64,000 nt of DNA. Origin: Dendrobates tinctorius. Its lineage: Eukaryota. Below the pieces are notes generated by a model. That model was not told where the DNA came from, did no database searches, and was given only the letters and a program-made list of their open reading frames with translations. The stretch's first letter is position 1. Each line of letters starts with the position of its first letter. Shown in pieces: positions 29,343-59,996 of the stretch. A program made the position numbers and the translations under genes. The stretch lies in contig NW_027361743.1 in the NCBI RefSeq assembly GCF_039654945.1, positions 2,852,001-2,916,000 on the forward strand. The letters are read 5' to 3'.

Positions 29343-32119
29343 ACCAATGGCTATAGATACACCCCTGATTAGAGCCCAATGGCTGTAGATACACCCCTGA
29401 TTAGAGCCCAATGGCTGTAGATACACCCCTGATTAGAGCCCAATGGCTGTAGATACACCCCTGATTAGAGCCCAATGGCTGTAGATACACCCCTGATTAG
29501 AGCCCCATGGCTGTAGATACACCCCTGATTAGAGCACATTGGCTGTAAATACACCCCTGATTAGAGCCCCATGGCTGTAGATACACCTCTGATTAGAGCC
29601 CAATGGCTGTAGATACACCCCTGATTAGAGCTGCATTGCTGTAGATACACCTCTGATTAGAGCCCAATAGCTGTAGATACACCCCTGATTTGAGCCCAAT
29701 AGCTGTAGAGACAACCCTGATTAGAGCACATTGGCTGTAAATACACCCCTGATTAGAGCTTAATGGCTGTAGAGACACCCCTGATTAGAGCCCAATGGCT
29801 GTAGATACACCCCTGATTAGAGTGCAATGGTTGTAGATACACCCCTGATTAGAGCCCAATGGCTGTAGATACACCCCTGACTAGAGCCCAATGGCTGTAG
29901 ATACACCCCTGATTAGAGTCAGTAGCAGTAGATACACCCCTTACTAGAGCCCAATGGTTGTAGATACACCCCTGATTAGAGCCTGATGGCTGTAGATACA
30001 CCCCTGATTAGAGCCCAATTGCTGTAGAGACAACCCTGATTAGAGCACATTGGCTGTAAATACACCCCTGATTAGAGCCCCATGGCTGTAGATACACCCT
30101 TGATTAAAGCCCAATGGCTGTAGATACACCCCTGATTAGAGCCCCATGGCTGTAAATACACCCCTGATTAGAGCACTATGGCTGTAGAGACACCCCTGAT
30201 TAGAGCCCAATGGCTGTAGATACACCCCTGATTAGAGCCCAATGGCTGTAGATACACCCCTGATTAGAGCCCAATGGCTGTAGATACACCCCTGATTAGA
30301 GTCAGTAGCAGTAGATACACCCCTTATTAGAGCCCAATAGCTGTAGATACACCCCTGATTAGAGTCAGTAGCAGTAGATTCACCCCTTATTAGAGCCCAA
30401 TGGCTGTAGATACACCCCTGATTAGAGCCTGATGGCTGTAGATACACCCCTGATTAGAGCCCAATTGCTGTAGAGACAACCCTGATTAGAGCACATTGGC
30501 TGTAAATACACCCCTGATTAGAGCCCCATGGCTGTAGATACACCTTTGATTAAAGCCCAATGGCTGTAGATACACCCCTGATTAGAGCCCCATGGCTGTA
30601 GATACACCCCTGATTAGAGCACTATGGCTGTAGAGACACCCCTGATTAGAGCCCAATGGCTGTAGATACACCCCTGATTAGAGCTCAATGGCTGTAGATA
30701 CACCCCTGATTAGAGCCCAATGGCTGTAGATACACCCCTGATTAGAGTCAGTAGCAGTAGATACACCCCTTATTAGAGCCCAATGGCTGTAGATACACCC
30801 CTGTGTTATGAATGAGTCACCGTAGGAGGCAAAAACAGAAATACTAGTTAAGTCCAGAAAACCAGAGAAGTTGGCAGCTATCGGATTGCAGACCCCTGAA
30901 CCTATCAACAACAACTAGCAGTAGCCGTGGGGGGTTCCTACGGTGCCCTAGACCCCTCGATCACAGCCGGAGAACTAAATAGCCTAAAGACAGAAAGGGA
31001 AATCTAAACTGCCCCAGAGCAGACCCCAAAGCAATAGGCAGCCCCCAACATATAATGACGGTGAAGCAAGATGAAAAAACACTCACACAGATAGAAAGAT
31101 AGGCTGAGCAAATGATGGGGCCCAAGCTAACTAAATAGGACAGGATAGAAAAGCTGCTGTCTGCAATCCGCCAAAACCCTATCAAAACAAGAGCCAACAG
31201 ACTGATAGGGAAAAAAACCCTGAAGACGCTAGGCTTCAAAAGACTATATCAGTGCTCAGGTATTTTCTGAAGACAGAGCAAAAAGGAATTCAGCTCACCC
31301 CAGCAGGGAATGGCAGAAATCCAGAAAAACAAGGCAAAACAAAACCAAAACACAAATGCAAAAAGCAGAGCAGAAAACTTAGCTTTTGAGGAGCAGGAAT
31401 CAGACTGGTCTCCAAGAATCCCTCAGAGAAATCACCCGCAAGGCAGAAGGGAGTCGGCTGCCTTATATCCAGTCAGCAATTCCAGTCACCCAGTCATCAT
31501 CATCCTGCTCAGCTGCTTGGTAATCAGCCTCACTACCTTCCTTCACCAGAAGACGGAGTTCATCAGACCTCAATGGTGAAGGGGAAAATGAACTCACAAC
31601 ATCCCTGATTAGAGCCCGATGGCTGTAGATACACCCCTGATTAGAGCCCAATGGCTGTAGATACACCCCAATTAGAGCCCAATGGCTGTAGATACACCCC
31701 TGATTAGAGCCCAATGGCTGTAGATACACCCCTGATTAGAGCCCAATGGCTGTAGATACACCCCTGATTAAAGCCAGTAGCTGTAGACACCCCTGATTAG
31801 AGGCCAATGGCTGTAGATACACCCCTGATTAGAGCCCAATGGCTGTAGGTACACCCCTGATTAGAGCCCAATGGCTGTAGATACACCCCTGATTAGAGCC
31901 CAGTGGCTGTAGATACACCCCTGATTAGAGCAAAATGGCTGTAGGTACACCCCTGATTAGAGCCCAATTGCTGTAGATACACCCCTGACTAGAGCCCAAT
32001 GGCTGTAGGTACACCCCTGATTAGAGACCAATGGTTGTAGATACACCCCTGATTAGAGCCCAATGGCTGTAGATACACCCCTGATTAGAGCCCAATAGCT
32101 GTAGATACACCCCTGATTA
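29343..32119. repeat. 32-bp minisatellite (GATTAGAGCCCAATGGCTGTAGATACACCCCT), ~46 + ~16 copies, split by a solo LTR
   Basis: Tandem units directly visible at 29343-30803 and 31602-32119. Confidence 0.95.
30804..31601. mobile_element. Solo LTR (798 bp) inserted in the minisatellite
   Basis: TGTTATGA...TCACAACA inverted ends; flanking duplication CCCCTG / TCCCTG. Confidence 0.8.
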
Positions 32120-35284: not shown

Positions 35285-36060
35285 ATGACAGCGGGGTTAA
35301 TACAGTCTGCATTTCCTGGAGAGATGAGTTTTCAGGTACTAACTGAAGTTTTCAATCATGAAGGGCAATTAGACATGCGGAGGCACTAAGTTCCAAAGGA
35401 TGGCGGATACACAAGATAATAAACAGAAATCTTGTAGAGAGTTGAGTGAGGAATGCATGAGATGGCAGATGCAAGGGACAAAAGAGTAGACAATGAATAG
35501 GTGGATTAGTCAGGCAGTAGAGTAAAGGATGGACTGGAGAGGTGCAAGAGTATTAGCTTGAAGGCAACACAAGAGGATATAGCAGTAGTCAAGACAAGTG
35601 ATGAAGATGGCATGCAGTAACATTTTAGTAGATTCGGGGTTCTAGTAATATTTTTGAGTTGGAGGAGGCAGGAGGTGGTAGGGCTTGTGGATGTGCAGTT
35701 AGAACACAGCAGAGTCAAAGGTTACACCAAGGAAGCAGACTTGTGACACGGGGTAAAGTGTTTAGTGAAATGGAATAAAGATGGTGAGCTTTAGAAATGT
35801 GATGAGAAGAAGGAAGGTACAGCTGATAGACAAGCTGGGATTCTGGACACCTGAGAGGTGACATCTGAGACAAAGAGGTCGATTTCAGTGTTATCGTCAT
35901 GTAGGCAGCATTGGACGTCATGGGGTTTTGTGAATGGTCCCAAGTTATAGTTATAGATGGTGAATAGTAGGGATCCCAGGACAGTGCATTGAGGAAAAGA
36001 GAGATCGAGAATATAAGTAGTATGGGAATGGGATACGCTATATGTGCGGTTAGTAATGAG
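35285..36060 (-). mobile_element. Older degraded L2 LINE, the target of the giant hAT insertion (continues at 55232-55360 and 55835-55945)
   Basis: Degenerate RT motifs. Across the hAT the minus strand reads SYAVDTADQSLLLEILFSLGIKDFSLSWIFSYL and LQSDFHPLHTTEIALAEVINDLL. Confidence 0.75.
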
Positions 36061-37300
36061 TAGAGTTGAGCGACTTTTGGTTTTTTAGGGTCGAGTTTCG
36101 TTTCGTGAAACCCGACTTTTCCAAAAGTCGGGTCGAGCAAGATCGTCCGATTATAGGGAAAAGTCGGGGTCGTCCCGAAACACGAAACCCAATGTAAGTC
36201 AATGGGGAATAAAAGTCGGCAGTGAGAGGAGGACAGGAAACACACCTTCAGTGCCCATTTGAATGCCAAAAGCATCAATTCTTCTTACTTAAGCTTGTCA
36301 ACCTTAATTAACTTCATAATACAAGTTACGCACTGAAAAATGGGGGTTATTTGGCTAAAGTTGTGGGGGGGAGGGCTGGCTGCAGGTTTTCATGTGCCCT
36401 GGGCGAAAGAGCGCCCCTTTAACACATACCACAACTCATCATGCTCCGATACGGCAGAGAAATAGCGGTATAGTACAATGAAAAATACTTCACTTTTTAC
36501 ATCTCATGACGAGGCCCATCTATTTCTCCATACAGAATCATTGGTCCCATATAATGTTTGAAACAGTATATGATGAGCTCCACATAACGCTACAGTATAT
36601 GTTGGTCCCCATGGATGAAGCTCCACTGTCTTATGGGCCCAAATAATACTCCAAACATAATGGGCCCCATTTCTAATGCTCTAGTGTATAATGGGCCCTG
36701 TAAATGCTGCTCCAGTGTCTGATGTCCACCTTTGGAATGTTCCAGTGTATGGTGGGCCCCATCTATCATTCTCCAGAGTATAGTGCTCCCCAAAAATTGC
36801 TGTCCCAACACTGAAAACAATCAAATAAGTCTCCTCGCTAGGGAATCCCTGTACTTGTCTGGACTCCTCGTCGTCCCCATCTTCCATCTCACTGCACAGT
36901 ATTTCAACTTTGCAAGTGCTGTGATCCTGAGCAAGCAGGGGGGGCCCACTCGTTGGCGACGGCACTGGCACAGGGCCCCTGATAGTACGGTGGTGTGTAT
37001 GATGACGGGTGGGCCGAACCTGCACTTTCATCTGCAGCTTCCTCTTTGTCACCGTGTAAGATGGAACTGTATATGGGAAGGGTAACCTGAGTTTCATCAG
37101 GGTGAGATTCAGGTCGTGTAGCGTGCGAGGGGAATGTAGTGGTCTGGGTCAATGTACCAGCAGATTCATCGAGCAGTGGCTGGGCATCAGTGCACTTGTG
37201 TCGCCCCCAGGAGTACGGTCGCCACAGTGGCATTACCTTCTTCCTAGGGAGTGTGATGTCATGCTTGGGAGCAACGAACGATCTCTCTAGCAGGTTAACT

Positions 37301-37777
37301 GATTGGGCGGCGTTATTCCCACGAGTCATGACCCTCCAAACAGCGTTCATGAAGGCAAAGTGTTTGTTTTACGTGGGCAGTATGGTTGCAAAGCTGAACC
37401 TTAAAGGAATGTCCAGAAGGGCACCACCAGGAGTGGAGCCTACGGTTAAATTCGACTCCACCTGGGAAACCTCAACCATGCCAGCTACAGAACAGATGCA
37501 CACATTGCAAGCTTAATTCCGTTAACGAACGAGACTCCGTCATGCCCCTCGGTCCGAGTCCAGCTTACTAGAGGGACACGTGAGGCTCTGGCACATAAGA
37601 TTGGCCAATAACTGGTGTGTCATGCCCTTACATGTCTGTGGCTGCATGTGCGCTACACTGAAAAGGCCAGCGTTTGTCGCTTACAGGTGCAGATAACCCG
37701 CTGAACAACGTTAGTGATGGGGATCACTGATTACAATTATTACCCGCGAACAATGATTTCCCAGTAAGTGCAGGTCA
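37301..37777 (+). pseudogene. Degenerate 18S rRNA-derived segment (3' half, with internal deletions)
   Basis: Colinear SSU motifs: GGCGGCGTTATTCCC, AGTATGGTTGCAAAGCTGAA-CTTAAAGGAAT, GAAGGGCACCACCAGGAGTGGAGCCT, TAATTCCG-TAACGAACGAGACTC, GCGCTACACTGA, GTGATGGGGATC, TTCCCAGTAAGTGC-GGTCA. Confidence 0.9.
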
Positions 37778-37886
37778 ACCGCAGTTCCGGAATTAGGCCT
37801 AACCGTCATTCCTGAAAAAATGAAAAACTTACGTGTGCAAACCACAGGTGCTGTTGCTTGCTTAACAGCTCGCCAGCCGTTCTCAC

Positions 37887-39200
37887 GCCCAGTATGGATT
37901 ACACGTGATTGCACAAAGGTGAGAAAGGGTACCGTATCCCCAGATAACATGTATAGATAGCGTACACATTCAAAATATATGTCTATACATCAGGAGGCAG
38001 GCTCAGATGGTGTTAGGCCCAGTATGGATTGCACGTGATTGCACAAAGGTTAGAAAGGGTACCGTTTCCCCGGATAACATGTATGGATAGCGTACACATT
38101 CAAAATATATGTCTATACATCAGGAGGCAGGCTCAGACGGTGTTAGGCCCAGTATGGATTGCACGTGATTGCACAAAGGTTAGAAAGGGTACCGTTTCCC
38201 CGGATAACATGTATGGATAGCGTACACATTCAAAATATATGTCTATACATCAGGAGGCAGGCTCAGATGGTGTTAGGCCCAGTATGGATTGCACGTGATT
38301 GCACAAAGGTTAGAAAGGGTGCCGTATCCCCAGATAACATGTATGGATAGCGTACACATTCAAAATATATGTCTATACATCAGGAGGCAGGCTCAGACGG
38401 TGTTAGGCCCAGTATGGATTGCACGTGATTGCACAAAGGTTAGAAAGGGTACCGTTTCCCTGGATAACATGTATGGATAGCGTACACATTCAAAATATAT
38501 GTCTATACATCAGGAGGCAGGCTCAGACGGTGTTAGGCCCAGTATGGATTGCACGTCATTGCACAAAGGTTAGAAAGGGTACCGTTTCCCCGGATAACAT
38601 GTATGGATAGCGTACACATTCAAAATATATGTCTATTCATCAGGAGGCAGGCTCAGACGGTGTTAGGCCCAGTATGGATTGCACGTGATTGCACAAAGGT
38701 TAGAAAGGGTACCGTATCCCCAGATGACATGTATGGATAGCGTACACATTCAAAATATATGTCTATACATCAGGAGGCAGGCTCAGATGGTGTTAAGCCC
38801 AGTATGGATTGCATGTGATTGCACAAAGGTTAGAAAGGGTACCGTTTCCCCGGATAACATGTATGGATAGCGTACACATTCAAAATATATGTCTATACAT
38901 CAGGAGGCAGGCTCAGACGGTGTTAGGCCCAGTATGGATTGCACGTGATTGCACAAAGGTTAGAAAGGGTACCATTTCCCCGGATAACATGTATGGATAG
39001 CGTACACGTTCAAAATATATGTCTATACATCAGGAGGCAGGCTCAGACGGTGTTAGGCCCAGTATGGATTGCACGTGATTGCACAAAGGTTAGAAAGGGT
39101 ACCGTATCCCCGGATAACATGTATGGATAGCGTACACATTCAAAATATATGTCTATACATCAGGAGGCAGGCTCTGACGGTGTCAGGCACAGTATGGATT
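37887..39200. repeat. 130-bp tandem array A, 10 near-identical copies
   Basis: ORF track repeats every 130 bp; unit starts GCCCAGTATGGATTGCACGTGATTGCACAAAGG. Confidence 0.97.
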
Positions 39201-39619
39201 TGACGGCCCAGACTACACAGCGGAGGAGCAGGGAGAAGTAAAGATTGCAAATGCTGGGGCCCTGCCCAAGCAAGGGGGGCCCACTCGTGGGCGTCGGTAC
39301 TGGCACTGGGCCCCTCATAGTACGGTGGTGTGTCTGACGGCGGGTGTGCACCACCACCGTCAGAGACACTTGATTGCTCTATGAAGGACCCTGTGCCAGT
39401 GCCCGTGCCCAAGAGTTGGCCTACCCACCTGTCCAGGGCAACGGCGCTCGCACGGTGTCGTGCGCTAGGTGGTGACCCCGGCCATGGGGGGGGAGGCAGC
39501 ACAGTTAGGGAGTTTTAGAAAGTGGCATATGTTGATGTTGGACATTCAGCTGATGCAAAAGGTGAAATAGGTCAAGTCCCAGGAAGAGGTGGACCAAAGC
39601 AAGCCAGTTTTCTGTCACC

Positions 39620-42600
39620 CTATGTGTCATCAGGGGAAGGTGGGACAAAATCCTTGGAAACCCATGCGTGGTTCATTTTAATGAAGGTTAGATCATCCAC
39701 ATTTTGGGTTGACAGACGGGTCCTTTTTTCTGTCAGGATTGATCCAGCTGCACTGAAGACTCTTTCCGATAGCACACTTGCAGCTGGGCAAGCGAGCTCC
39801 TGTAAGGCATATTGTGCCAATTCAGGCCAGGTGTCCAGTTTAGCGGCCCAATAGTCAAAGGGGAATGACCTGTGTGGGAGAACATCGATATGGGAGGAAA
39901 AGTAGTTTGTAACCATAGTTGACAACTGCTGTCTCCTGTCACTTTCCATCGATGCAGTATTACCAGTTGTGTGAGCGGTACTTGAAAAATCAGTCCACAA
40001 CATTGTCATGAAATCCCTGTCTCCAACGCCACTTCTGCTGTATGCACCACGAACACCTCTGCCAAGCTGCCCCCGGCCCGTATGGCTCGTGTGAGAACCA
40101 TCACCGCTGCTGTGTGCTGGGAATGCCTCAAGCAACCGATTTACCAGAGTTGCTTGTTTATTAGCCAATATTAGGTCAAGGTTCTCCTGTGGCATGATGT
40201 TTTGTAATTTGCCTTTACAGCGTGGATCCAGGATGCTGGCCAACCAGTAGTCGTCATCGTTCATCATTTTGGCAATGCGGGGGTCCCTTTTTAGGATCTG
40301 CAAGGCATAATCTGACATGTGGGCCAATGTTCCCGGTGTCAATGATGCACTGCAAGTGCTGGTTGGAGGAGCACTTTCTGGCAAATCCACATCCCTCCAG
40401 TCACGCACAAACCCTGTACCAGACCTTGCCACGCCAACATTTTCACTTGCCCCATGAGATGCATCCTCCTCCCCTAAGTAATCATCCCCATCATCCTCCT
40501 CCTCCTCTTCTTCCTCCACCTCGTCCAGGAGAGGTCCCTGAGCAGACAATGGCTGAATGTCATCAAGGATTCCCTCCTCTTCCTCCTCATCAACATTGGC
40601 TGCAGAAGCCTGCTCCTTAAGGTGCGTCAAAGTTTGCATGAGCAGACGCATAAGTGGGATGCTCATGCTTAGGATGGCGTCGTCTGCACTTACCAGCCGT
40701 GTGCATTCCTCAAAACACTGAAGGACTTTACAGAGGTCTTTCAGCTTCGACCACTGCACACCGGTCAACTCCATGTCTGCTCTCAAAGTGCCTGGCCGTG
40801 TATCCTCCCACAAATGCATTATGGCCTGCCTCTGCTCGCACAGCCGCTCCACCATGTGCAGGGTGGAGTTCCACCTTGTTGCAATGTCGATAATGAGGCG
40901 GTGGTTGGGAAGGTGGAGCAATCGCTGCAGCTTCTGCATACGAACGGAGTGTACATGCGACCAGCGGATGTGCGCGCACAGTCTTCGCACCTTCTGGAGC
41001 AGGGCTGTTAACTCCGGATAATTTTTGAGGAAGCACTGCACCACCAGGTTCAAGGTGTGAGCCAAGCAAGGTATGTGGCTGAGTTTTGAAAGGGCTATGG
41101 CTGCCACAAAATTACGCCCGTTATCACTAACTACCTTGCCTGTCTCAAGATGTACACTGCCCAGCCATGACTCAGTTTGTCGCTGAAAGTACTCGGCCAG
41201 CACCTCGGCGGTGTGTCTGTCGCCCAAAAACATCATCTGCAACACTGCCTGCTGACGCTTTCCACTAGCTGCTCGATAGGGGGACACCTCGTGTGCAACA
41301 GTGGCAGCTGCAGATGGAGTGCTCGTACGACTGCGCTCTGTGGATGAGCTTTCGCTTCTGGAGGAGGAGGAGAAGGGTCAAACGCCTACAGCCAACTGTT
41401 TCCTATACCGTGGACTAGGCAGCACTGTCCCACCACCGCTGTCCCCTGTGGACCCTGCATCCACCACATTAACCCAGTGCACAGTGATGGACACGTAACG
41501 GCCCTGGCCATGCCGACTGGACCATGCATCAGTTGTGAGGTGCACCTTTCCGCTCACTGACTGCTTGAGTGCATGGACAATGCGGTCTTTCACATGATGG
41601 TGGAGGGCTGGGATGGCTTTGCGAGAGAAGAAGTGGCGACTGGGTAGGTCATAGCGTGGTACTGCATAGGCCATGAGTTCGCGGAAAGCTGCGCTTTCCA
41701 CCAACCGAAAGGGCATAATCTCAAACGAGATTAGTTTGGCAATGTGGGCGTTCAAACCCAGTGTACGTGGATGAGAGACTGAGTACTTTCTTGACCTACT
41801 CATAGTGTCTGGGAGGGTGAGCTGGACTTGAGAGATGCATATGGTGGAAGTAGCGGTGGACAGGGCGGACTGAGAGAGGGTTGATGATGGTGATGGAGTT
41901 GGTGTTCTTTCTGATGGCCTAGAATCAGTCTTTCGTTGATATAACAGTGGGATTCCCTGACTGCTGTGGCCTTGCAACGACACCTCAACATTTGCTGCTG
42001 TGCTAACCGGTGGGCTTACAGTGGGGGAAACAATGTAGCGTTGCTGACTACCTTCGTTGTGATCAGTTGCACATGTGGCACTTGAGGTTTGGTGTTGTGT
42101 CCACGCTTGCAAGTGCATGCTGGTTAAATGTCTAAGCATGCAACTGGTATTCAAATTTTTAAGATTTTTCCCTCGGCTAAAGGTCTTTGCGCACTTCTTA
42201 CAGATAACCTTGGCCTGATCATGAGGATTTTGTTCAAAAAAGTGCCACACTGCACTCTTCCTACTTTGGCAGACATTTTGCGGCCTAGCACACTGTGATC
42301 TTTTGACCCTCTGGACAAGCTGTCCAGCAACTCTTTTGATGTTTGGAACCTGTCTTTGGAGTGCTCCGGGCCTGCCAGATAACAGCTGTTGCGATGTCGA
42401 TGTCTGCTGTGGATGCTCCTCATCTGAGCTATTGGAAGCAGCACCCTCTTCCCCCAATGGATGCCAATCTGGGTCAACAACTGGGTCATCCATCACCTCC
42501 TCTTCTATGTCATGTGCACCTTCCTCTGTGTCACCGTGTATGGTGGTATAGTGTGCGGGAAGGGGCACCTGAGTCTCATCAGGGTCAGAATCTGGCTCTG

Positions 42601-43150
42601 TACACTGCGAGGACAATGTAGTGCTCTGAGTGAATGTACCAGCAGAATCATCCATCAGCGGCTGTGCATCAGTGCACTCCATGTCAGATTCATCTTGGCC
42701 TGGGTAATTCACCATTTCACTTGATAATCCAGGCATGGTATGTGAAAACAGCTCCATGGAGTAATCAGTAGTATGGCCTGCGTCATCCTTCAATCTTGGT
42801 TGGGGTGAAGGACACAAGGAAAGGTGTGGTTCATGAACATGAGCCTCCAATGACGACTCAGTGCTTTTACTTTTTACAACTGACGAAGAGGAGGCGATAG
42901 AGCTGGAGGCTGAGTCAGCAATGTAAGACAAAACTTTTTCCTGATGCTCTGGCTTTAAAAGCGGTTTGCCAACTCCTAGAAAACTAAGCGTTCGAGGCCT
43001 TATGTAGCCAGACGATGACGCAGGCTCAACACCTCCTGCATTCGGTCCTATTTTGCTCTTGCCACTATCATCAGATCCACCACCCACACCATCATTACCA
43101 GCTGCCAACCCCCGCCCAATTCCACGGCCTCTTCCACCAGCCTTCCTCAT
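39620..43150 (-). CDS. hAT (Ac/ZBED-like) transposase, ~1176 aa, with one in-frame TGA at 41380-41378
   Basis: BED finger (SAVWHFF...CKKC...RHLTSMH); LTTDAWS, VSDNG, CLAH and TRWNS motifs; dimerisation motif CPAASVLSERVFSAAG. The two listed ORFs are in the same frame, 30 codons apart. Confidence 0.92.
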
Positions 43151-45516
43151 TTTTGGTAGAAATGTAGACAAAATCCAACAAACTATATAGTAATGTAAAA
43201 CAAGGTACAAGGTGTCTATAGGACAGGGGAGATTTTGAATTTCTGCAGACACTTGTGGACACTGGACACTTTTGGATTGTGTGAGGCCCACTGAATATCT
43301 GAGCGCTCTGTCACAGGCTCGATGGCACAGCTGTGACCAAAGTGACTAGAGGATAAGGGAGATTTTGAATTTCTGCACACACTTGTGGACACTGGACACT
43401 TTTGGATTGTGTGAGGCCCACTGAATATCTGAGCGCTCTGTCACAGGCTCGATGGCACAGCTGTGACCAAAGTGACTAGAGGATAAGGGAGATTTTGAAT
43501 TTCTGCACACACTTGTGGACACTGGACACTTTTGGATTGTGTGAGGCCCACTGAATATCTGAGCGCTCTGTCACAGGCTCGATGGCACAGCTGTGACCAA
43601 AGTGACTAGAGGATAAGGGAGATTTTGAATTTCTGCACACACTTGTGGACACTGGACACTTTTGGATTGTGTGAGGCCCACTGAATATCTGAGCGCTCTG
43701 TCACAGGCTCGATGGCACAGCTGTGACCAAAGTGACTAGAGGATAAGGGAGATTTTGAATTTCTGCACACACTTGTGGACACTGGACACTTTTGGATTGT
43801 GTGAGGTCCACTGATATCTGAGCGCTATGTGACAGGCTCGATGGCACAGCTGTGACCAAAGTGACTAGAGGATAATTGAGATTTTGAATTTCAGCAGACA
43901 CTTGTGGACACTGGACACTTTTGGATTGTGTGAGGCCCAATGAATATCTGAGCGCTATGTGACAGGCTCGATGGCACAGCTGTGACAAAAGTGACGAGAG
44001 GATAAGGGAGATTTTGAATTTCTGCAGACACTTGTGGACACTGGACACTTTTGGATTGTGTGAGGCCCACTGATATCTGAGCGCTATGTCACAGGCTCGA
44101 TGGCACAGCTGTGACAAAAGTGACTAGATGATAAGTGAGATTTTGAATTTCAGCAGACACTTGTGGACACTGGACACTTTTGGATTGTGTGAGGCCCAAT
44201 GAATATCTGAGCGCTATGTGACAGGCTCGATGGCACAGCTGTGACAAAAGTGACGAGAGGATTAAGGAGATTTTGAATTTCTGCAGACACTTGTGGACAC
44301 TGGACACTTTTGGATTGTGTGAGGCCCACTGATATCTGAGCGCTATGTGACAGGCTCGATGGCACAGCTGTGACCAAAGTGACTAGAGGATAAGGGAGAT
44401 TTTGAATTACAGCAGACACTTGTGGACACTGGACACTTTTGGATTGTGTGAGGCCCACTGATATCTGAGCGCTATGTCACAGGCTCGATAGCGCAGCTGT
44501 GACAAAAGTGACTAGAGGATAAGGGAGATTTTGAATTTCAGCAGACACTTGTGGATACTGGACACTTTTGGATTGTGTGAGGCCCACTGATATCTGAGCG
44601 CTATGTCACAGGCTCGATGGCACAGCTGTGACAAAAGTGACGAGAGGATAAGGGAGATTTTGAATTTCTGCAGACACTTGTGGACACTGGACACTTTTGG
44701 ATTGTGTAAGGCCCAATGAATATCTGAGCGCTATGTGACAGGCCCGATGGCACAGTTGTGACAAAAGTGACGAGAGGATAAGGGAGATTTTGAATTTCTG
44801 CAGACACTTGCAAGGAAGTGCATTGAGCAGCAAGGTGGTGTGCTGGTAAAAGGGGAAAAAAAAACAAAAAAAAACTCTTAAATCTTCTTCCTGAGCGAGT
44901 GTGAACGAGCTGAGTGTGACCTGAGCGTAAGTGTGTGACTTGAAATTCAGTGAAGAGGTATTTGGAAAACCTATAATAAATACCTGTGTGAGTTGCTGAA
45001 TTGTAAGTTGCTGAGTGCTTTCTACCTGTTCAATTTTTGTGGGGCTTTGGGGGCTTGTTTAACCTATATTTTCTCTCTTCAGGGTTAATCTCTTATTTTA
45101 CTATCTGTGTTTTTAAGGGTAAACTATATTGCATTTAAATCTTGAGGTGTAACTATATTCACAAGGGGTTAATTAAGGGTGGGAGTTCATACAGTAATTA
45201 AGGGTTTATAAGGGGCAGCTGGTTGGGGCTCAACTCCTTTTGGAAGTGCATTGAGCAGCAAGGTGGTGTGCTGGTAAAAGGGGAAAAAAACAAAACTCTT
45301 TTAAATCTTCTTCCTGAGCGAGTGTGAACGACCTGCTGAGTGTGACCTGAGCGTAAGTGCGAACTGTGTTAAGTGTGTGACTTGAAATTCAGTGACTTTA
45401 GATTCAGGGCGTTTCCAAGGGAGGTCTTACTGAATTGCTGTTATATTAATACTTTTTTTTTTTTTTTTTTTAATTTATTTTTGCTTATCTTATTGTCTGG
45501 TGCAATCCCCATTAGG

Positions 45517-46501
45517 ATGTGCTCCACTATTGCCAATGCCATCCAGTGCACGTCTTGCCGCATGTATGAAATCCTTGAACAGCCGGTCGAGGGTGCATAC
45601 TGCTGTGCAAGATGTGAGCACGTTGTGCATTTGGAAGCCCAGATACTGAATCTAAATGTGCAGCTGGCAACACTGAGATCCATAGACAATATGGAAAGGA
45701 GTCTTCTGCTCACTGAGCAGACGCTCAATGGGATAGATGAGGGGGGGGGATGCTAGGTTGGAGCTGCAGGACAATGAAGCAGCTAGCTGGGTGACAGTTA
45801 GAAGGTGGGGTAGAGGGAAGAGCACCAGGGAGGCTAGTCCTGATCTGGCACACCCCAATAAGTTTGCTAAGTTGGCGGATGAGGGGAGTGTTAGTGCAGG
45901 AGTAGCACTGCTGCAGCAAGGCATGTCCTCTGAAAGCCGGAGGAGTGTCTGCTCCAGTAAGGGGGGAAATAGGAGAGCAGGGCAGGCCAGACAGTTTCTG
46001 GTAGTGGGAGACTCAATTATTAGGGGAACAGATAGGGCAATCTGTCACAAAGACAGGGATCGTCGAACGGTGTGCTGCCTACCTGGCGCTCGAGTCTGAC
46101 ACATCGCTGATCGGGTTGACAGATTACTGGGAGGGGCTGGAGAGGATCCAGTGGTCATGGTGCATATTGGCACAAATGACAAAGTTAGAGGTAGGTGGAA
46201 GGTCCTTAAAGATGATTTCAGGGAATTAGGCTGTAAGCTTAAAGCAAGGACCTCCAAGGTGGTATTTTCGGAAATACTTCCTGTACCACGTGCCACGCCA
46301 GAGAGGCAACGGGAGATTAGGGAGGTTAATAAGTGGCTCAGGAATTGGTGTAGGAAGGAGGGGTTTGGGTTCCTGCAGAACTGGGCCGACTTCTCAGTTG
46401 GCTACAGGTTCTACGCTAGGGACGGGCTGCACCTCAATGGGGAGGGTGCAGCTGTGCTGGGGGAGAAAATGGCTAGAAGGTTGGAGGAGTGTTTAAACTA
46501 G
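45517..46501 (+). pseudogene. CR1 ORF1: zinc finger/leucine zipper plus SGNH esterase; one frameshift (G-run ~45745) and one TGA (46097)
   Basis: CTSC...CARC; LVVGDSII, HIGTND and DGLHLN motifs. Confidence 0.88.
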
Positions 46502-46592
46502 GGACGGGGGGGAGGGTATTCCTTTTATAGGAGGGGAAGACAGTGCAGATAGAGACCTGGGCACAAATAATGACATTGGGGGTGGGGGTGGC

Positions 46593-49445
46593 ATGGGGGG
46601 TGGGGTTAGAACAGTTAATAATTTAAGAAAGAATAGAGGTACAGAGAGATACATAAAGTGCATGTATACTAATGCCAGAAGTCTCGCCAACAAAATGGAG
46701 GAATTGGAGTTAATGTTGTTGGAACATAATTATGACATGGTGGGGATATCTGAGACATGGCTGGATGAGAGCCATGACTGGGCTGTTAATTTACAGGGCT
46801 ATAGTCTGTTCAGAAATGACCGTACAAATAAGCGAGGGGGAGGCGTGTGTTTATATGTAAAATCATCCTTAAAACCCATCCTTCGTGATAATACAGTATA
46901 TATGAATCTAATGAAAATGTAGAGTCCCTGTGGGTAGAGATAAGGGGAGGGGGGAAAAATAATAAATTACTGATAGGGGTTTGTTATAAATCTCCAAAAA
47001 TAATGGAAGCAACAGAGAATATCCTCATAAAGCAAATAGATGAAGCAGCGACTAAAGGAGAAGTCATTATTATGGGGGACTTCAACTACCCTGAAATACA
47101 TTGGGGAACCGAAACCTGCAGTTCCAGCAAAGGTGACAGGTTTCTGACAACGTTGAGAGACAATTACCTTTCACAACTGGTTCAGGACCCAACAAGAGGG
47201 GGGGCACTGCTAGACCTAATATTAACCAACAGGCCAGACCGCATATCAAATGTAAGGGTTGAGGGTCACTTGGGTAATAGTGATCACAAATTAATAAGTT
47301 TTCATGTATCCTTTAATAAGATGTGTAGTAGAGGGGTTACAAGGACACTAAACTTCAGGAAGGCAAATTTCCATTGGATGAGAGATGATCTTGGTGCAAT
47401 TAACTGGGACGATATCCTGAGACATAAAAATACACAAAGAAAATGGGAGGCGTTTATTAGCATCCTGAATAGGACCTGTGCACAATATATACCGTATGGG
47501 AATAAACATGTGAGAAATAGGAGGAAACCACTATGGCTAAATAGAGCTGTAAGGGGCGCAATAAGAGATAAAAATAAAGCATTTAGAGAATTAAAGCAAG
47601 TAGGTAGTGATGAGGCATTAACTAAATACAGAAGATTAAATAAATTCTGTAAAAAGCAAATCAAGACAGCAAAGATTGAGACAGAGAGACTCATTGCCAG
47701 AGAAAGTAAAAATAATCCCAAAATATTCTTTAACTACATAAATAGTAAGAAACTAAAAAATGATAGTGTTGGTCCCCTTAAAAATAGTCTGGGTGAAATG
47801 GTGGATGAGGAGGAGGAAAAAGCCAATATGCTAAATGACTTTTTTTCAACAGTATTTACACAAGAAAATCCCATGACAGATAACATGATCAGGGATAAAA
47901 ATTCTCCATTAAATGTCACCTGCTTAACCGAGCAGGAAGTACGGCGGCGTCTACAAATCACTAAAATTGACAAATCCCCGGGCCCGGATGGGATACACCC
48001 ACGAGTACTGCAGGAATTAAGCACAGTCATAGATAGACCACTATTTTTAATCTTTAAAGATTCCATAATAACAGGGTCTGTACCACAGGACTGGCGTATA
48101 GCAAATGTGGTGCCAATATTCAAAAAGGGGACAAAAACTGAACTTGGAAATTATAGGCCAGTAAGTTTAACCTCAACTGTGGGTAAAATCCTGGAGGGTT
48201 TTCTAAGAGATACTATACTGGAGTATCTGGAGAAGAATAACCTTATGACCCAATATCAACATGGGTTTACAAGAGACCGTTTGTGTCAGACTAATCTGAT
48301 AAGCTTTTATGAAGAGGCAAGTTCCGGACTGGACCAAGGGAATGCAGTGGACGTGGTGTACATGGACTTTTCAAAAGCTTTTGATACGGTGCCACACAAG
48401 AGGTTGATACATAAAATGAGAACAATGGGGATAGGGGAAAATATGTGTAGGTGGGTTAAGAGCTGGCTCAGGGATAGGAAACAAAGGGTGGTTATTAATG
48501 GAGCACACTCGGACTGGGTCACGGTTAGCAGTGGGGTACCACAGGGGTCAGTTTTGGGCCCGCTTCTTTTTAACATATTTATTAATGACCTTGTAGGGGG
48601 CATAGAGAGTAGAATTTCAATATTTGCAGATGACACTAAACTCTGCAGGGTAATTAATACAGAGGAGGACAATTTTATATTACAGGAGGATTTATGTAAA
48701 CTAGAAGCTTGGGCTGATAAATGGCAAATGAGCTTTAATGGGGATAAATGTAAGGTCATGCACTTGGGTAGAACGAACAAGTTGTATAATTATGTGCTTA
48801 ATTGTAAAACACTGGGCAAAACAGTCACTGAAAAAGACCTGGGTGTATGGGTGGACGACAAACTCACATTTAGTGGCCAGAGTCAAGTAGCTGCTGCAAA
48901 GGCAAATAAAATAATGGGATGCATTAAAAGAGGCATAGATGCTCATGAGGAGAACATAATTTTACCTCTATATAAGTCACTAGTGCGACCACACTTAGAA
49001 TACTGTGTACAGTTCTGGTCTCCGGTGTATAAGAAAGACATAGCTGAACTGGAGCGGGTGCAGAGAAGAGCGACCAAAGGTTATTAGGGAACTAGGGGGT
49101 CTGCAATACCAAGACAGGTTATTACACTTGGGGTTATTTAGTTTGGAGAATCGAAGGCTTAGGGATGATCTTATTACAATGTATAAATATATGTGGGGAC
49201 AATACAAAGACCTTTCTAATGATCTTTTTACTCTTAGACCTGTGACGGGGACAAGGGGGCATCCTCTACGTCTGGAGGAAAGAAGGTTTAAGCATACTCA
49301 CAGACGCGGATTCTTTACTGTAAGAGCAGTGAGACTATGGAACTCTCTGCCATATGATGTTGTAATGAGTGATTCACTACAAAAATTTAAGAAGGGCCTG
49401 GATGCCTTTCTTGAAAAGTATAATATTACAGGGTATATACACTAG
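46593..49445 (+). pseudogene. CR1 ORF2: APE endonuclease plus reverse transcriptase; frameshifts at ~46895 and ~49078
   Basis: YTNARS, GISETW, MGDFN, GNSDH, PQGSVLGP, FADD and WNSLP motifs. Confidence 0.93.
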
Positions 49446-50600
49446 TCTCCTTAATATTGCGTTGATCCAGGGAGCTAGTCTGATTGCCGTATGTGGAGTC
49501 GGGAAGGAATTTTTTTCCCTAATGTGAAGCTTACTGTTGCCACATGGGGTTTTTTTGCCTTCCTCTGGATCAACATGTTAGGGCAAGTTAGGATAGGATA
49601 TTGGTTGAACTAGATGGTCTCAAAGTCTCCCTTCAACCTTAATAACTATGTTACTATGTTACTATGTTACTGGACACTTTTGGATTGTGTGAGGCCCACT
49701 GATATCTGAGCGCTATGTGACAGGCTCGATGGCACAGCTGTGACCAAAGTGACTAGAGGATAAGGGAGATTTTGAATTTCAGCAGACACTTGTGGACATT
49801 GGACACTTTTGGATTGTGTGAGGCCCACTGATATCTGAGCGCTATGTCACAGGCTCGATGGCACAGCTGTGACAAAAGTGACTAGAGAATAAGGGAGATT
49901 TTGAATTTCAGCAGACACTTGTGGACACTGGACACTTTTGGATTGTGTGAGGCCCACTGATATCTGAGCGCTATGTCACAGGCTCGATGGCACAGCTGTG
50001 ACAAAAGTGACGAGAGGATAAGGGAGATTTTGAATTTCTGCAGACACTAGTGGACACTGGACACTTTTGGATTGTGTGAGGCCCACTGATATCTGAGCGC
50101 TATGTGACAGGCTCGATGGCACAGCTGTGACCAAAGTGACTAGAGGATAAGTGAGATTTTGAATTTTAGCAGACACTTGTGGACACTGGACACTTTTGGA
50201 TTGTGTGAGGCCCACTGATATCTGAGCGCTATGTCACAGGCTCGATGGCACAGCTGTGACAAAAGTGACTAGAGGATAAGGGAGATTTTGAATTTCAGCA
50301 GACACTTGTGGACACTGGACACTTTTGGATTGTGTGAGGCCCACTAATATCTGAGCGCTATGTCACAGGCTCGATGGCACAGCTGTGACAAAAGTGACTA
50401 GAGGATAAGGGAGATTTTGAATTTCAGCAGACACTTGTGGACACTGGACACTTTTGGATTGTGTGAGGCCCAATGAATATCTGAGGGCTATGTGACAGGC
50501 TCGATGGCACAGCTGTGACCAAAGTGACTAGAGGATAAGTGAGATTTTGAATTTCAGCAGACACTTGTGGACACTGGACACTTTTGGATTGTGTGAGGCC

Positions 50601-53226
50601 TAGAGTTGAGCGATACCGTCCGATACTTCAAAGTATCGTATCGGATGGTATCGGCCGATCTTTAAAAAAAGTATCGGTATCGCCGATTCCGATACCGGAA
50701 GTCCCATTCAAGTCTATGGGACTTCCGGTATCGGAATAAGAAAAACCCTTTCCTGCCCTTGTACAGCCTCTCTGGGGTCTGTACGGGCCTTTCGGGGGGC
50801 TGTGCCGGCCTGCCAGGGGGTCTGTGCAGGCTCCGGTGGTCTGTGCCGGCCTGCCGGTTGTCTGTGCAGGCTCCGGGGGGCTGTGCCGGCCTGCCGGGGG
50901 GCTGTGCCGGCCTGCCGGGGGGCTGTGCAGGCTCCGGGGGGCTGTGCCGGCCTGCCGGGGGGCTGTGCCGGCCTGCCGGGGGGCTGTGCCGGCCTGCCGG
51001 TGGTCAGTGCAGGGTCCGGGGGTCTGTGCAGGCATCGTCCGATGGGACTACAAGTCCCATCGGGCGATGCCTGCTACCATGACAGTGATTGACACATTAG
51101 CCAATGATGGGACAGTAGTAGTCCCATCATCCGGCTAATGTGTTAAATGTAAAAAAAAAAAAAAAAAAAAAAAAAATTACATGCTACAAACATACAACAT
51201 GCATACTACATACATGCTACATTCATACTACATACTACATACATGCTACATACATACTACATATATACTACATGCATGCTACATACATACTACATGCTAC
51301 ATACATACCACATACATGCTACATATATACTACATGCATGCTACATACATACTACATATATACTACATGCATGCTACATACATACTGCATGCTACATGCA
51401 TGCTACATACATACTACATACATACTACATGCTACATACATACCACATATATACTACATACATACAATACATTCATACAATACATACATAGACATACAGT
51501 ACATATAACATAGAGTAACATACTTACCAATACTTGTCACATTGTTCCCCGAAGCCATTGTCGTCTACGGAATAAATATTAACATAACAAACCACAAAAA
51601 TACTCACCCACGATCCGAAGCAGTCCACGAGTGTGTCCCACGACGATCTTGGGTAGAGAACTGCAGCATCAGCTGTTGCTGCCGTTCTCTACGGGCTGCA
51701 GGAATCCAATGACGGAAGGTAGGTATCCTTCCGCACTGTATTCCTCCGCCACTTAAAAAAAAAAAAGTCCCTAGTCTCACTTTATGCCATTGCTGTGTGG
51801 GAATTTCCCACGCAGCAATGGCATAAAGTGAGACTAGGGACTTTTTTTTTTTTAAGTGGCGGAGGAATACAGTGCGGAAGGATACCTACCTTCCGTCATT
51901 GGATTCCTGCAGCCCGTAGAGAACGGCAGCATCATCTGATGCTGCAGTTCTCTACCCAAGATCGTCGTGGGACACACTCGTGGACTGCTTCAGATCGTGG
52001 GTGAGTATTTTTGTGGTTTGTTATGTTAATATTTATTCCGTAGATGACAATGGCTTTGGGGAACAATGTGACAAGTATTGGTAAGTATGTTACTCTATGT
52101 TATATGTACTGTATGTCTATGTATGTATTGTATGAATGTATTGTATGTATGTAGTATATATGTGGTATGTATGTAGCATGTAGTATGTATGTAGTATGTA
52201 TGTAGCATGCATGTAGTATATATGTAGTATGTATGTAGCATGCATGTAGTATATATGTAGTATGTATGTAGCATGTAGTATGTATGTAGTATGTATTGTA
52301 TGTATGTAGTATATATGTGGTATGTATGTAGCATGTAGTATGTAGCATGCATGTAGTATATATGTAGTATGTAGTATGTATGTAGTATGTATGTGGTATG
52401 TATGTAGTATGTATGTAGCATGCATGTAGTATGTATGTAGTATGTATGTAGTATGTATGTAGTATGTATGTAGCATGTAGCATGCATGTAGTATATATGT
52501 AGTATGTATGTAGTATGTATGTAGTATGTATGTAGCATGCAGTATGTATGTAGCATGTATGTAGTATATATGTAGTATGTATGTAGCATGCATGTAGTAT
52601 GTATGTAGCATGTATGTAGTATGTATGTAGTATATATGTAGTATGTATGTAGCATGTAGTATGTATGTAGCATGCATGTAGTATGTATGTAGTATTTTTT
52701 TTTTTTTTTTAACATTTAACACATTAGCCGGATGATGGGACTACTACTGTCCCATCATTGGCTAATGTGTCAATCACTGTCATGGTAGCAGGCATCGCCA
52801 GATGGGACTTGTAGTCCCATCGGACGATGCTTGCACAGACCCCCGGACATCAGCACAGCCCCCCGGCAGGCCGGCACAGCCCCCCGGCAGGCCGGTACAG
52901 ACCCCCACAGGGTGCACAGACCACCGGCAGGCCGGCACAGCCCCCCGGCAGGCCGGTACAGACCCCGGGCAGTCCACACAGCCCCCCGGCAGGCCGGCAC
53001 AGCCCCCCGGCAGGCCGGCAGAGACCCCCGGAAGGCCCGAAATGACGGCGCATCATGATGCGCACACACCGCGCATCATGATGACGTCAGGCCGTCAATC
53101 AACTGAACTTCCGATTCCGATGCCGAATTCCGATATTGAAAAAATATCGGAAGTCGGTATCGGAATTCCGATACAGCAAGTATCGGCCGATACCCGATAC
53201 TTGCGGTATCGGAATGCTCAACACTA
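50601..53226. mobile_element. 2.6-kb palindromic (foldback) non-autonomous hAT element
   Basis: Ends TAGAGTTGAGC / GCTCAACACTA; 8-bp TSD GTGAGGCC (50593-50600, 53227-53234); arms over 1 kb symmetric about 51804, containing a GC-rich ~20-bp minisatellite, poly(A) and TACA/CATA repeats. Confidence 0.92.
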
Positions 53227-54409
53227 GTGAGGCCCAATGAATATCTGAGCGCTATGTCACAGGCTCGATGGCACAGCTGTGACAAAAGTGACGAGAGGAT
53301 AAGGGAGATTTTGAATTTCTGCAGACACTTGTGGACACTGGACACTTTTGGATTGTGTGAGGCCCACTGATATCTGAGCGCTATGTGACAGGCTCGATGG
53401 CACAGCTGTGACCAAAGTGACTAGAGGATAAGGGAGATTTTGAATTTCAGCAGACACTTGTGGACACTGGACACTTTTGGATTGTGTGAGGCCCACTGAT
53501 ATCTGAGCGCTATGTCACAGGCTCGATGGCACAGCTGTGACAAAAGTGACTAGAGGATAAGGGAGATTTTGAATTTCAGCAGACACTTGTGGACACTGGA
53601 CACTTTTGGATTGTGTGAGTCCCACTGATATCTGAGCGCTATGTCACAGGCTCGATGGCACAGCTGTGACAAAAGTGACTAGAGGATAAGGGAGATTTTG
53701 AATTTCAGCAGACACTTGTGGACACTGGACACTTTTGGATTGTGTGAGGCCCAATGAATATCTGAGCGCTATGTGACAGGCTCGATGGCACAGCTGTGAC
53801 CAAAGTGACTAGAGGATAAGTGAGATTTTGAATTTCAGCAGACACTTGTGGACACTGGACACTTTTGGATTGTGTGAGGCCCAATGAATATCTGAGCGCT
53901 ATGTGACAGGCTCGATGGCACAGCTGTGACAAAAGTGACGAGAGGATAAGGGAGATTTTGAATTTCTGCAGACACTTGTGGACAATGGACACTTTTGGAT
54001 TGTGTGAGGCCCACTGATATCTGAGCGCTATGTGACAGGCTCGATGGCACAGCTGTGACAAAAGTGACGAGAGGATAAGGGAGATTTTGAATTTCTGCAG
54101 ACACTTGTGGACACTGGACACTTATGGATTGTGTGGACAATTATGGATTGTGTGAGGCCCACTGAATATCACAGCACTATGTCACAGGCAGAAATTGGCT
54201 AGTGTATCACAAACTACAAGGTGTATGTAGAATTGGGCAGAATAGGAATCTCCCTAGAGTGCAGATCTGTAAGAACGGAACATGTCCTCGTTTTATTCTC
54301 ACAGAGTGACACACTGATAGCTTCACTGTGGCTGTGATAACAGCCGTTACACGGTACTGTGTGAGGAGCGTACACCGCTGTATGGTGTGAAAAAATGCAC
54401 GCTCAGTAC

Positions 54410-54839
54410 CTCAGCAGGACAAAAAAAAAAATTGGGATTGCTTTTAAAAAAAGCAGTTTGCGGAGCAGTGGGTAAACAGCAATGCAGGAATGTCAGGAAG
54501 CCTTAGAAGGCAGCCCAACAACCAACACCACTGATACACCACTATATAGCCTCCCCTTGCACTGCACACACAGTGACTGATGTGTTGTACAGGCAAAATC
54601 GCTAGCAGCAGAAGCAGTTTTTTTTTCTTCTCAGCAGGACAAAAAAAAAAATTGGGATTGCTTTTAAAAAAAAGCAGTTTGCGGAGCAGTGGGTAAACAG
54701 CAATGCAGGAATGTCAGGAAGCCTTAGAAGGCAGCCCAACAACCAACACCACTGATACACCACTATATAGCCTCCCCTTGCACTGCACACACAGTGACTG
54801 GTGTGTTGTACAGGCAAAATCGCTAGCAGCAGAAGCAGT
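54410..54839. repeat. 220-bp tandem duplication in the hAT subterminal region
   Basis: CTCAGCAGGACAAAA...CGCTAGCAGCAGAAGCAGT at 54410 and 54630. Confidence 0.9.
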
Positions 54840-54919
54840 ATTTGGTGTCTTCTTCCCTGCCTAACGCTCTCCCTACAAAATCATCATCAGCAGCAGCTCT
54901 CCCTATTCTGAGATCAGCA

Positions 54920-55070
54920 TGAGTAACATGGCGGTCGGCGTGCACGCCCTTTTATATCCCCTGTGACGCCCCCCAAAGCAAGCCAATCACTTGCATGCCC
55001 TTCTGAAAGATGGTGGTGACCCGTGCCTATGTCATCACGTTGCCCACAGTGTCCGTGGATCCTGATTGGC
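54920..55070 (-). promoter_or_regulatory. Putative transposase promoter (two CCAAT boxes, TATAAAA at 54956-54950, CCGCCATGTT downstream)
   Basis: Motif order and spacing fit a Pol II core promoter facing the transposase; locally CpG-rich. Confidence 0.5.
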
Positions 55071-55364
55071 TGAAAAAGAGCGCAAAACAAACTTTTGAAA
55101 CGCGACTTTGGCGCGTAAGTCGCCGACCTCGTGGCCGACCTCATCCTAGGGTCGGGTTTCGTTTCATGAAACCCGACTTTGCCAAAAGTCGGCGACTTTT
55201 GAAATTTTTCGACCCGTTTCGCTCAACTCTAGTAATGAGGTATGAGAAGATCCAGGAGAGGGAAAAGTCTTTGATGCCAAGTGAAAAGAGGATCTCTAGT
55301 AGGAGGGACTGGTCAGCTGTGTCAACGGCATAAGACAAGCGTAGGTGGAGGACAGAGTAATGTA

Positions 55365-58971: not shown

Positions 58972-59996
58972 ATGAGACGGACTTTACAACCTACACAAGT
59001 TGCTCAGGTATTGCAGATCATCCAGGATGGCACATCAATGCGAGCTGTGGCAAGAAGGTTTGCTTTGTCTGTCAGTGCAGTGTCCAGAGGCTGGAGGCGC
59101 TACCAGGAGACAGGCCAGTAAACCAGGAGACGTGGAAGGGGCCGTAGGAGGGCAACAAACCAGCAGCAGGACCGCTACCTCAGCCTTTGTGCAAGGAGGA
59201 ACAGAAGGAGCACTGCCAGAGCCCTGCAAAATGACCTCCAGCAGGTCACAAATGTGCATTTGTCTGCACAAACGGTTAGAAACCGACTCCATGAGGATGT
59301 CTGAGGGCCCGATGTCCACAATTGGGGGTTGTGCTCACAGCCCAACACCATGCAGGATGCTTGGCATTTGCCACAGAAGACCAGGATTGGCAAATTCGCC
59401 ACTGGCTCCCTGTGCTCTTCACAGATGAAAGCAGATTCACACTGAGCACATGTGACAGACGTGACAGAGTCTGGAGACTCAGTGGAGAGTGATCTGCTGC
59501 CTACAACATCCTTCAGCATGACCGGTTTGGCAGTGGGTCAGTAATGGTGTGGGGTGGCATTTCTTTGGAGGGCCGCACAGCCCTCCATGTGCTCGCCAGT
59601 GGTGGACTGACTGCCATTAGGTACCGAGATGAGATCCCAAGACCCCTTGTGAGACCATATGCTGGTGCGGTTGGCCCTGGGTTCCTACTAATGCAGGACA
59701 ATGCCAGACCTCATGTGGCTGGAGTGTGTCAGCAGTTCCTGCAAGATGATGGCATTAAAGCTATGGACTGGCCCGCCCATTCCCCAGACCTGAATCTGAT
59801 TGAACACATCTGGAAGATCATGTCTCGCTCCATCCACCAACGTCACATTGCACCACAGACTGTCCAGGAGTTGGCGGATGCTTTATTCCAGGACTGGGAG
59901 GAGATCCCTCATGAAAACATCTGCCGACTCATCAGGAGCATGCCCAGGTGTTGTGGAGAGGTCAAACAGGCACGTGGAGGCCACACACACTACTGA
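58972..59996 (+). pseudogene. Tc1 transposase pseudogene
   Basis: HTH N-terminus; FTDESRF, MQDNARPH and WPAHSPDLNLIEHIW motifs; several stops and frameshifts. Confidence 0.9.

Follow-up and report, generated by a model that had tools for sequence, protein, structure and literature searches.

An oversized hAT transposon in Dendrobates tinctorius with an 18S rRNA-like piece and tandem arrays, from an abundant dendrobatid family

Introduction

How does a DNA transposon come to hold more than twice the DNA that is usual for its superfamily, and is the additional DNA cargo or machinery? The question is raised by a 64,000-nucleotide stretch of the poison frog Dendrobates tinctorius (NCBI RefSeq assembly GCF_039654945.1, contig NW_027361743.1, positions 2,852,001 to 2,916,000 of the forward strand; the whole stretch is called the window here, and coordinates are given in its own numbering). 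Positions 36061-55231 of the window are one insertion of a hAT DNA transposon. It is very probably a single insertion of an autonomous-type hAT that belongs to an abundant dendrobatid family, carries passenger cargo and, as we infer, is composite in origin.

An earlier reading of the window, made from its letters alone (the original prediction), had proposed a family of oversized hATs that spreads rRNA-like sequence and satellites, and had ranked it as a candidate for an undescribed system. As that reading assumed, autonomous hATs measure a few kilobases, with a usual size of 2.5-5 kb and terminal inverted repeats (TIRs) of 10-25 bp (PMC3942097). Elements of the superfamily make up 3.91% of the D. 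tinctorius assembly, in 265,361 annotated pieces (PMC11152451), and 255 Mb in O. pumilio (PMC6278860). Neither of these two dendrobatid genome papers describes the architecture reported here or mentions 18S, and a full-text search of the literature for hAT elements with captured 18S returned nothing relevant.

Results

A single insertion with intact hAT ends

The boundaries of the element comprise TIRs, a target-site duplication (TSD) and a motif-rich subterminal region:

36053-36060: left TSD copy, 8 bp, GTAATGAG, the same as at 55232-55239
36061-36073, plus strand: left TIR, 13 bp, TAGAGTTGAGCGA, 3′ end in the transposase sense
36074-36260: left subterminal region with repeated AAGTCG/CGACTT motifs, including the 46-bp segment 36086-36131
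55219-55231, minus strand: right TIR, exact reverse complement of the left TIR, 5′ end in the transposase sense
55232-55239: right TSD copy, GTAATGAG

The exact 13-bp TIRs and the perfect 8-bp TSD of the original prediction are thus both present. Similarity between the left and right ends stops beyond the 13 bp. Allowing at most one mismatch, the TIR 13-mer occurs at four sites in the window, versus 0.04 expected; the element's own ends account for two of these, and the others are at 50601, where a nested element has its left end, and at 4623-4635, where there is an unrelated hAT-like terminus. Farther in, the 46-bp subterminal segment 36086-36131 is repeated in direct orientation at 55147-55192 with 93% identity, and within the outermost 200 bp at each end AAGTCG/CGACTT is the most frequent 6-mer. 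AAGTCG is absent from both tandem arrays of the element (arrays A and B, described below), and its other internal occurrences lie only within two nested insertions. The sequence nTnnnnAn is reportedly the target preference of Ac-type hATs, and GTAATGAG matches it, with T at position 2 and A at position 7; of the flanks of two other copies, one matches both positions and one only the T (three sites in all).

The hAT-like terminus at 4623-4635, on the minus strand, reads TAGAGATGAGCGAAC and is followed by a different subterminal sequence. Ends of the form TAGAG.TGAGCG seem to be common to several hAT families of the D. tinctorius genome.

The plus-strand purine content of the two flanks is 66% and 72%, consistent with one interrupted sequence. 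The claim that the element interrupts an L2 stands in part: the TSD and the purine-rich flanks bear out a single insertion, and the identity of the interrupted sequence as L2 is not confirmed, as the flanks have no Pfam match and weak reverse-transcriptase-like similarity appears only at 27661-28152, farther from the element. After subtraction of both nested elements and one TSD copy, the core of the element measures 11,680 bp, in agreement with the predicted core of about 11.7 kb. Within it, the transposase fragment, 18S segment, array A, transposase, array B and promoter named by the original prediction were all recovered at or near the places it had assigned to them. In the transposase sense, the order of modules is right end, promoter-like region, 221-bp duplication, array B, gene, hairpin, array A, 18S piece, relic, left end.

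A hAT transposase gene with one premature stop

The element contains a gene that is predicted to encode a transposase:

39620-43150, minus strand: transposase gene of BED-hAT type, 1,176 codons including one in-frame TGA
41380-41378, minus strand: the in-frame TGA, at residue 591
42113-42256, minus strand: BED finger (Pfam PF02892, E = 9e-12)
41528-41530, minus strand: first catalytic Asp, in TTDAW, assigned by motif only
41123-41125, minus strand: second catalytic Asp, in SDNGRN (VVSDNGRN), aligned with Hermes
39764-39766, minus strand: catalytic Glu, in SERVFS, aligned with the Hermes C-terminus
39674-39883, minus strand: C-terminal hAT dimerisation domain (Pfam PF05699, E = 6e-12)

Judged by its BED finger, D-D-E motifs, dimerisation domain and Hermes homology, the predicted enzyme is a standard hAT transposase. 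Specifically, a profile of 13 family sequences matches the Hermes transposase in the PDB in two stretches (E = 5e-18), with an alignment that covers the second Asp, the CxxH motif (CLAH), the RW motif (TRWNS) and the Glu; the C-terminal piece alone also matches Hermes transposase (E = 1e-14), and the profile additionally matches the BED domain of ZBED2. The BED finger is common, but not universal, in the hAT superfamily.

The description of the gene as near-intact proved accurate. The frame opens with an ATG at 43150, runs for 590 codons to the TGA and continues for 585 codons in the same frame to a stop that ends at 39620. With one in-frame stop, this copy cannot make the full-length enzyme. 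Relatives have a sense codon at the alignment column of the TGA, indicating that the copy is a recently disabled autonomous copy.

The nearest proteins are dendrobatid, with 90% identity over the C-terminal 298 residues in D. tinctorius and 63-72% identity in Ranitomeya. More distant frog relatives are 35-45% identical and about 750-970 aa long; most align only from residue 297, although a few start as early as about residue 180. The N-terminal extension, some 300 residues long, is matched, at 63-67% identity, only by the closest dendrobatid relatives, with partial cover in a few distant ones. The point at which most distant relatives begin to align indicates that this long extension is lineage-specific. 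One Logan contig found through the relatives represents a 43%-identical family. Many relatives carry the NCBI name 'zinc finger BED domain-containing protein 4-like' or '6-like', and in the Ranitomeya imitator models P0001, P0003, P0004, P0011, P0025 and P0030 transposase pieces are fused to P450, Ig-like, fibronectin, kinase and Ras-type domains, as expected for transposon copies in automatic annotation.

A very abundant family that includes the left-side cargo

The status of the family was assessed with contigs from four public runs, under three organism labels, aligned to the left 6 kb of the element (36000-41999). One DNA run (X1) alone yields 77,389 contig pieces at ≥90% identity, of which 21,267 (27%) are at ≥99% and 31,076 (40%) at 95-99%. 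Summed word depth in X1, a quantity that does not equal copy number, is about 0.7-1.0 million over the end, the relic and the 18S piece and about 1.2-1.5 million over the gene, and falls only within array A, where contigs collapse.

Contigs from X9 and from X15, a run under another organism label, start exactly at 36061/36060 beside unrelated flanks, providing independent confirmation of the left end. The 18S piece is bridged on both sides by a contig from X15 (37264-37873, seven differences) and one from X9 (37242-37782); a further X15 contig reaches from array A across the hairpin to the gene stop (39160-39667), and the head-to-tail joint of array A is present in another organism's run. The contigs that bridge the 18S piece, together with the similar depth over the modules, indicate that the left-side cargo is family-wide. 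Of the 40 best-supported differences, at least 23 are positions where this copy stands against almost all the others; it thus differs from the family majority by at least about 0.5% over the aligned 6 kb, where at most 233 of 6,000 sites are variable.

Shorter forms are present as well. A deletion derivative found in three runs has lost 981 bp (36862 to 37844), comprising most of the relic and the whole 18S piece; larger deletion derivatives also lack array A; and a form resembling a miniature inverted-repeat transposable element (MITE) joins 36131 to the right terminal sequence. The data therefore support an element that belongs to a very abundant dendrobatid family of oversized hATs carrying an rRNA-like piece and arrays. 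The corresponding proposal of the original prediction holds for the left 6 kb, with the qualification that derivatives without 18S exist.

Downstream modules and the origin of the cargo

Between the transposase stop codon and the left end lie four modules:

39260-39440, minus strand: long imperfect hairpin of 180 nt that lies past the stop codon and before array A, in the 3′ untranslated region (UTR)
37887-39200: array A, 130-bp unit × 10.1, 96% matches
37375-37806, plus strand: decayed internal 18S rRNA fragment, antisense to the transposase (Rfam SSU_rRNA_eukarya, 98.6 bits)
36910-37196, minus strand: relic of an older transposase gene copy with an internal deletion, about 80% identical to its resident counterparts

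The 18S piece corresponds to model positions ~1118-1666, with internal deletions and many broken base pairs, and is not a full-length, structure-preserving small-subunit rRNA. We read it as a decayed antisense passenger that bears no sign of function. The unit of array A occurs nowhere else in the window.

The relic combines two parts of the gene in their original orientation. In particular, 36910-37048 resembles the resident 3′ UTR (39245-39383), and 37018-37196 resembles the N-terminal coding sequence (42495-42678), both with about 80% identity; in translation, 37033-37197 matches transposase residues 158-212 with 62% amino-acid identity. The two pieces abut in the relic and their resident counterparts are 3.1 kb apart, which marks the relic as an older copy with an internal deletion. 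The homology of the resident 3′ UTR to the relic ends at 39245, where array A begins, and between the relic and the left end lies about 0.8 kb that has no paralogue in the element.

This layout suggests that the downstream half is composite, or macrotransposon-like, in origin; no other single event would account as simply for the order of gene, 3′ UTR, array A, 18S piece, deleted copy and end. The downstream half would have arisen once, long ago, when an autonomous element took as its terminus the far end of a neighbouring copy that had an internal deletion; the intervening host DNA, namely satellite A and an orphan 18S piece, would have been taken along, and the composite would then have been amplified.

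The main alternative holds that the 18S piece and array A were gained by template switching during gap repair after an excision (filler DNA or transduplication), that the relic is a nested fragment unrelated to them and that no composite transposition took place. hAT excision sites are repaired from templates; both breakpoints of the 18S piece fall inside the rRNA, and neither a poly(A) nor an rDNA junction is present; and the relic is itself an internal deletion of the kind left by abortive gap repair. Template switching, however, needs separate events to bring the satellite, the rRNA piece and the deleted gene copy together just inside the same end, whereas the composite model covers all three, and we consider it a serious possibility that is nonetheless unlikely to be correct.

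Upstream modules and a possible function of the non-coding DNA

Upstream of the gene, the features are as follows:

54950-55069, minus strand: promoter-like region, with motifs read from sequence
55065-55069, minus strand: CCAAT, putative promoter motif
54983-54987: inverted CCAAT, putative promoter motif
54950-54956, minus strand: TATAAAA, putative promoter motif
54410-54853: 221-bp direct duplication in the 5′ region, 97-98% identical
53234-54189 (53227-54135 by repeat detection): array B part 3, 129-bp unit × 7, then an incomplete final unit
49669-50600: array B part 2, 129-bp unit × 7.2
43208-44810: array B part 1, 130-bp unit × 12.4

The ratio of observed to expected CpG is 1.04 over 54854-55231. 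Array B is split into three pieces and holds about 26.6 units in all, each of 129-130 bp. The two 130-bp arrays had been described as twins, which is right as to period and wrong as to sequence. A common origin was considered and rejected: the best local alignment of the units over all rotations and both strands scores 10, versus a shuffle mean of 10.7, and BLAST between arrays A and B finds nothing. Arrays A and B thus have the same 129-130-bp period with unrelated units, and the window holds no further array of that period. A role of the arrays as transposase-binding sites is likewise unlikely, since neither array contains AAGTCG or CGACTT, the subterminal motif.

The sense strand between the putative start site and the ATG contains 4 ATG versus 15.9 expected in 977 nt (non-array leader, one array B unit and the 57 nt preceding the start codon; P = 0.0006), a depletion to which the 221-bp duplication contributes part and which it thereby inflates; the antisense strand of the same region has 15. 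ATG is the most depleted CpG-free trinucleotide on the sense strand of this region, and the 3,437 nt of array B contain 1 ATG on the sense strand versus 57 on the antisense strand. This pattern fits a predicted long, ATG-poor 5′ leader made of array B and the region upstream of it. However, 12 of the 64 trinucleotides are nearly absent from the array B unit, and the ATG argument is therefore weak for the array unit alone. The 5′ region contains no consensus donor for a 5′-UTR intron that would remove array B; a 76-aa open reading frame (ORF) from it has no match in an exact-product look-up, and a 25-mer just upstream of the start codon has none in a metagenome scan.

The non-coding modules might be functional, with array B acting as a long leader, devoid of upstream start codons, that adjusts how the transposase is transcribed or translated and with the hairpin and/or arrays feeding, or serving as decoys for, small-RNA silencing. 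Such functions would help to account for the success of the family. The ATG depletion of the 5′ region, the strand asymmetry of array B and the high stability of the 180-nt hairpin (39260-39440; -114.3 kcal/mol, z = -8.9 against 200 shuffles) speak for them. Absence of ATG from a 130-bp unit, though, is expected for about a fifth of trinucleotides; deletion derivatives and MITE-like forms that lack the modules also spread; and recent common descent alone explains the conserved order. We hold functional modules to be doubtful, and continue to read the modules as passenger DNA.

Later insertions in array B

Array B is interrupted by two elements:

44811-49668, plus strand: nested CR1 long interspersed nuclear element (LINE), with an esterase-type ORF1, endonuclease and reverse transcriptase, and a (ACTATGTT)n tail
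50593-50600 and 53226-53233: 8-bp TSD of the nested hAT-like element, GTGAGGCC
50601-53225: nested non-autonomous hAT-like element with 1.3-kb palindromic arms and TIRs TAGAGTTGAGCGATACC and TAGTGTTGAGCATTCC

Both the CR1 LINE and the second, non-autonomous hAT-like element would have entered array B later. The CR1, correctly recognized in the original prediction, has a GDSL-esterase-type ORF1 and an ORF2 with endonuclease and reverse transcriptase in a 694-aa open stretch; at its landing site, about 5 bp of array B are lost and none duplicated. The second element had been called a foldback. Its hAT-type TIRs and own 8-bp TSD identify it as a non-autonomous hAT-like element; array B continues in phase across it with exactly 8 bp duplicated. 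Its arms contain a 21-bp GC-rich array and an 11-bp TACATACTACA array, and its subterminal motif, of the GGTATCGG type, differs from that of the host element. Its first 13 nt are identical to the TIR of the host element; with this tip in common, one transposase might conceivably act on both (cross-mobilisation). Rfam matches to MIR6288 and mir-4477 at 51742-51866 score below the gathering threshold and coincide with the centre of the perfect hairpin (~51804), so they are most likely artefacts.

The idea that the cargo is private to this locus, or an assembly artefact, was weighed because arrays assemble poorly; nothing was found in its support. Independent samples and other organism labels bridge the left-side module junctions, the phase of array B is unbroken across both nested insertions, and the window contains no N, leaving this explanation very improbable. 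It is scarcely credible that the gene is a domesticated host ZBED4/ZBED6-like gene, as the NCBI names of its relatives might suggest, given that intact TIRs and a TSD surround it, that very many near-identical copies lie at different sites, that it has a premature stop and that its relatives are fused into unrelated P450, kinase and Ig-like models.

Two further features lie outside the element. A 32-bp satellite (CCAATGGCTGTAGATACACCCCTGATTAGAGC) occupies 29344-32119 in two blocks of 46 and 16 units, and another DNA transposon is represented by a fragment at 59544-59996, an ORF whose product has an endonuclease domain of the DDE_3 (Tc1/mariner) type (E = 5e-11).

Discussion

We read 36061-55231 as one copy of an autonomous-type hAT with passenger cargo. 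By analogy with established hAT mechanisms, its BED-finger/DDE transposase would bind the 13-bp ends and the AAGTCG-rich subterminal regions, cut the element out and paste it elsewhere, duplicating 8 bp of target. As both ends are intact, intact copies could in principle mobilise the present copy in trans. The additional ~7 kb would be non-coding family baggage.

Several observations weigh against parts of this reading. Contig data do not give copy number and represent array interiors poorly. In organism C (run X17), the summed depth of the 18S piece and array A is far below that of their neighbours; the two may not be carried by all lineages or subfamilies, or may diverge faster. No AATAAA or ATTAAA is present downstream of the transposase stop on the gene's strand. 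The composite step is drawn from the ~80% internal homologies, and nested insertion plus deletion, or gap-repair template switching, could yield the same layout.

Set beside known systems, the element is most like other autonomous hATs (Ac, hobo, Hermes, and the Ac-type clade that includes the ancestors of ZBED1/4/6). It has the same 8-bp TSD, a 13-bp TIR that is within the superfamily range, subterminal short repeats, an N-terminal BED finger, a D-D-E core with an inserted domain, and a C-terminal dimerisation domain, and it likewise has deletion derivatives and MITE-like forms. It differs from them in a core more than twice the usual size, a transposase of 1,176 codons with an N-terminal extension of ~300 residues, and 4.8 kb of tandem arrays plus an rRNA fragment inside the element. 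In maize, Ac and fractured Ac (fAc) provide the termini of macrotransposons, 10-28 kb in size, which are known to excise and reinsert (PMC9910405). There, one outer end comes from an intact, gene-bearing part and the other from a fractured or deleted copy, foreign DNA being enclosed by the two, and the present element would be alike; unlike the maize case, the composite origin is deduced here from ~80% relic homologies, the product is a high-copy family and not a one-off allele, and the host is an animal. Satellite-seeding transposons also hold homogeneous internal arrays inside an element bounded by TIRs and a TSD, but in the present case two arrays, equal in period and unrelated in sequence, lie on either side of the gene of an autonomous-type element, in a layout that would be family-wide. 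Scattered rRNA pseudogene fragments are, like the piece described here, decayed, internal to 18S and functionless-looking, but the present piece is a constant component of a transposon's interior, and DNA transposition has multiplied it along with the element.

The suggestion of an undescribed system is not borne out by these comparisons: the tested features are those of a standard hAT, and the cargo looks like decayed passenger DNA. Provisionally, we regard the family as undescribed but otherwise ordinary, an unusually large hAT. A bolder scenario, which we put forward tentatively and think rather unlikely, is that a full hAT and a fractured copy moved together, captured a satellite and an orphan 18S piece and were amplified across poison frogs, with the ATG-poor leader and the hairpin perhaps retained as modulators of expression or silencing. 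If true, this would be the first animal case of alternative transposition founding a high-copy family.

For the genomes that carry it, the family contributes to the hAT share of dendrobatids, seeds a 6-Gb frog genome with very many spurious 18S matches and with two 130-bp 'satellites', and contaminates gene models and public protein sets with ZBED4/6-like names and P450, kinase and Ig-like fusions. It offers a clean example of a DNA transposon that has been more than doubled by passenger DNA and still amplifies, and the relic near one end suggests composite transposition as a testable route of cargo acquisition in animals.

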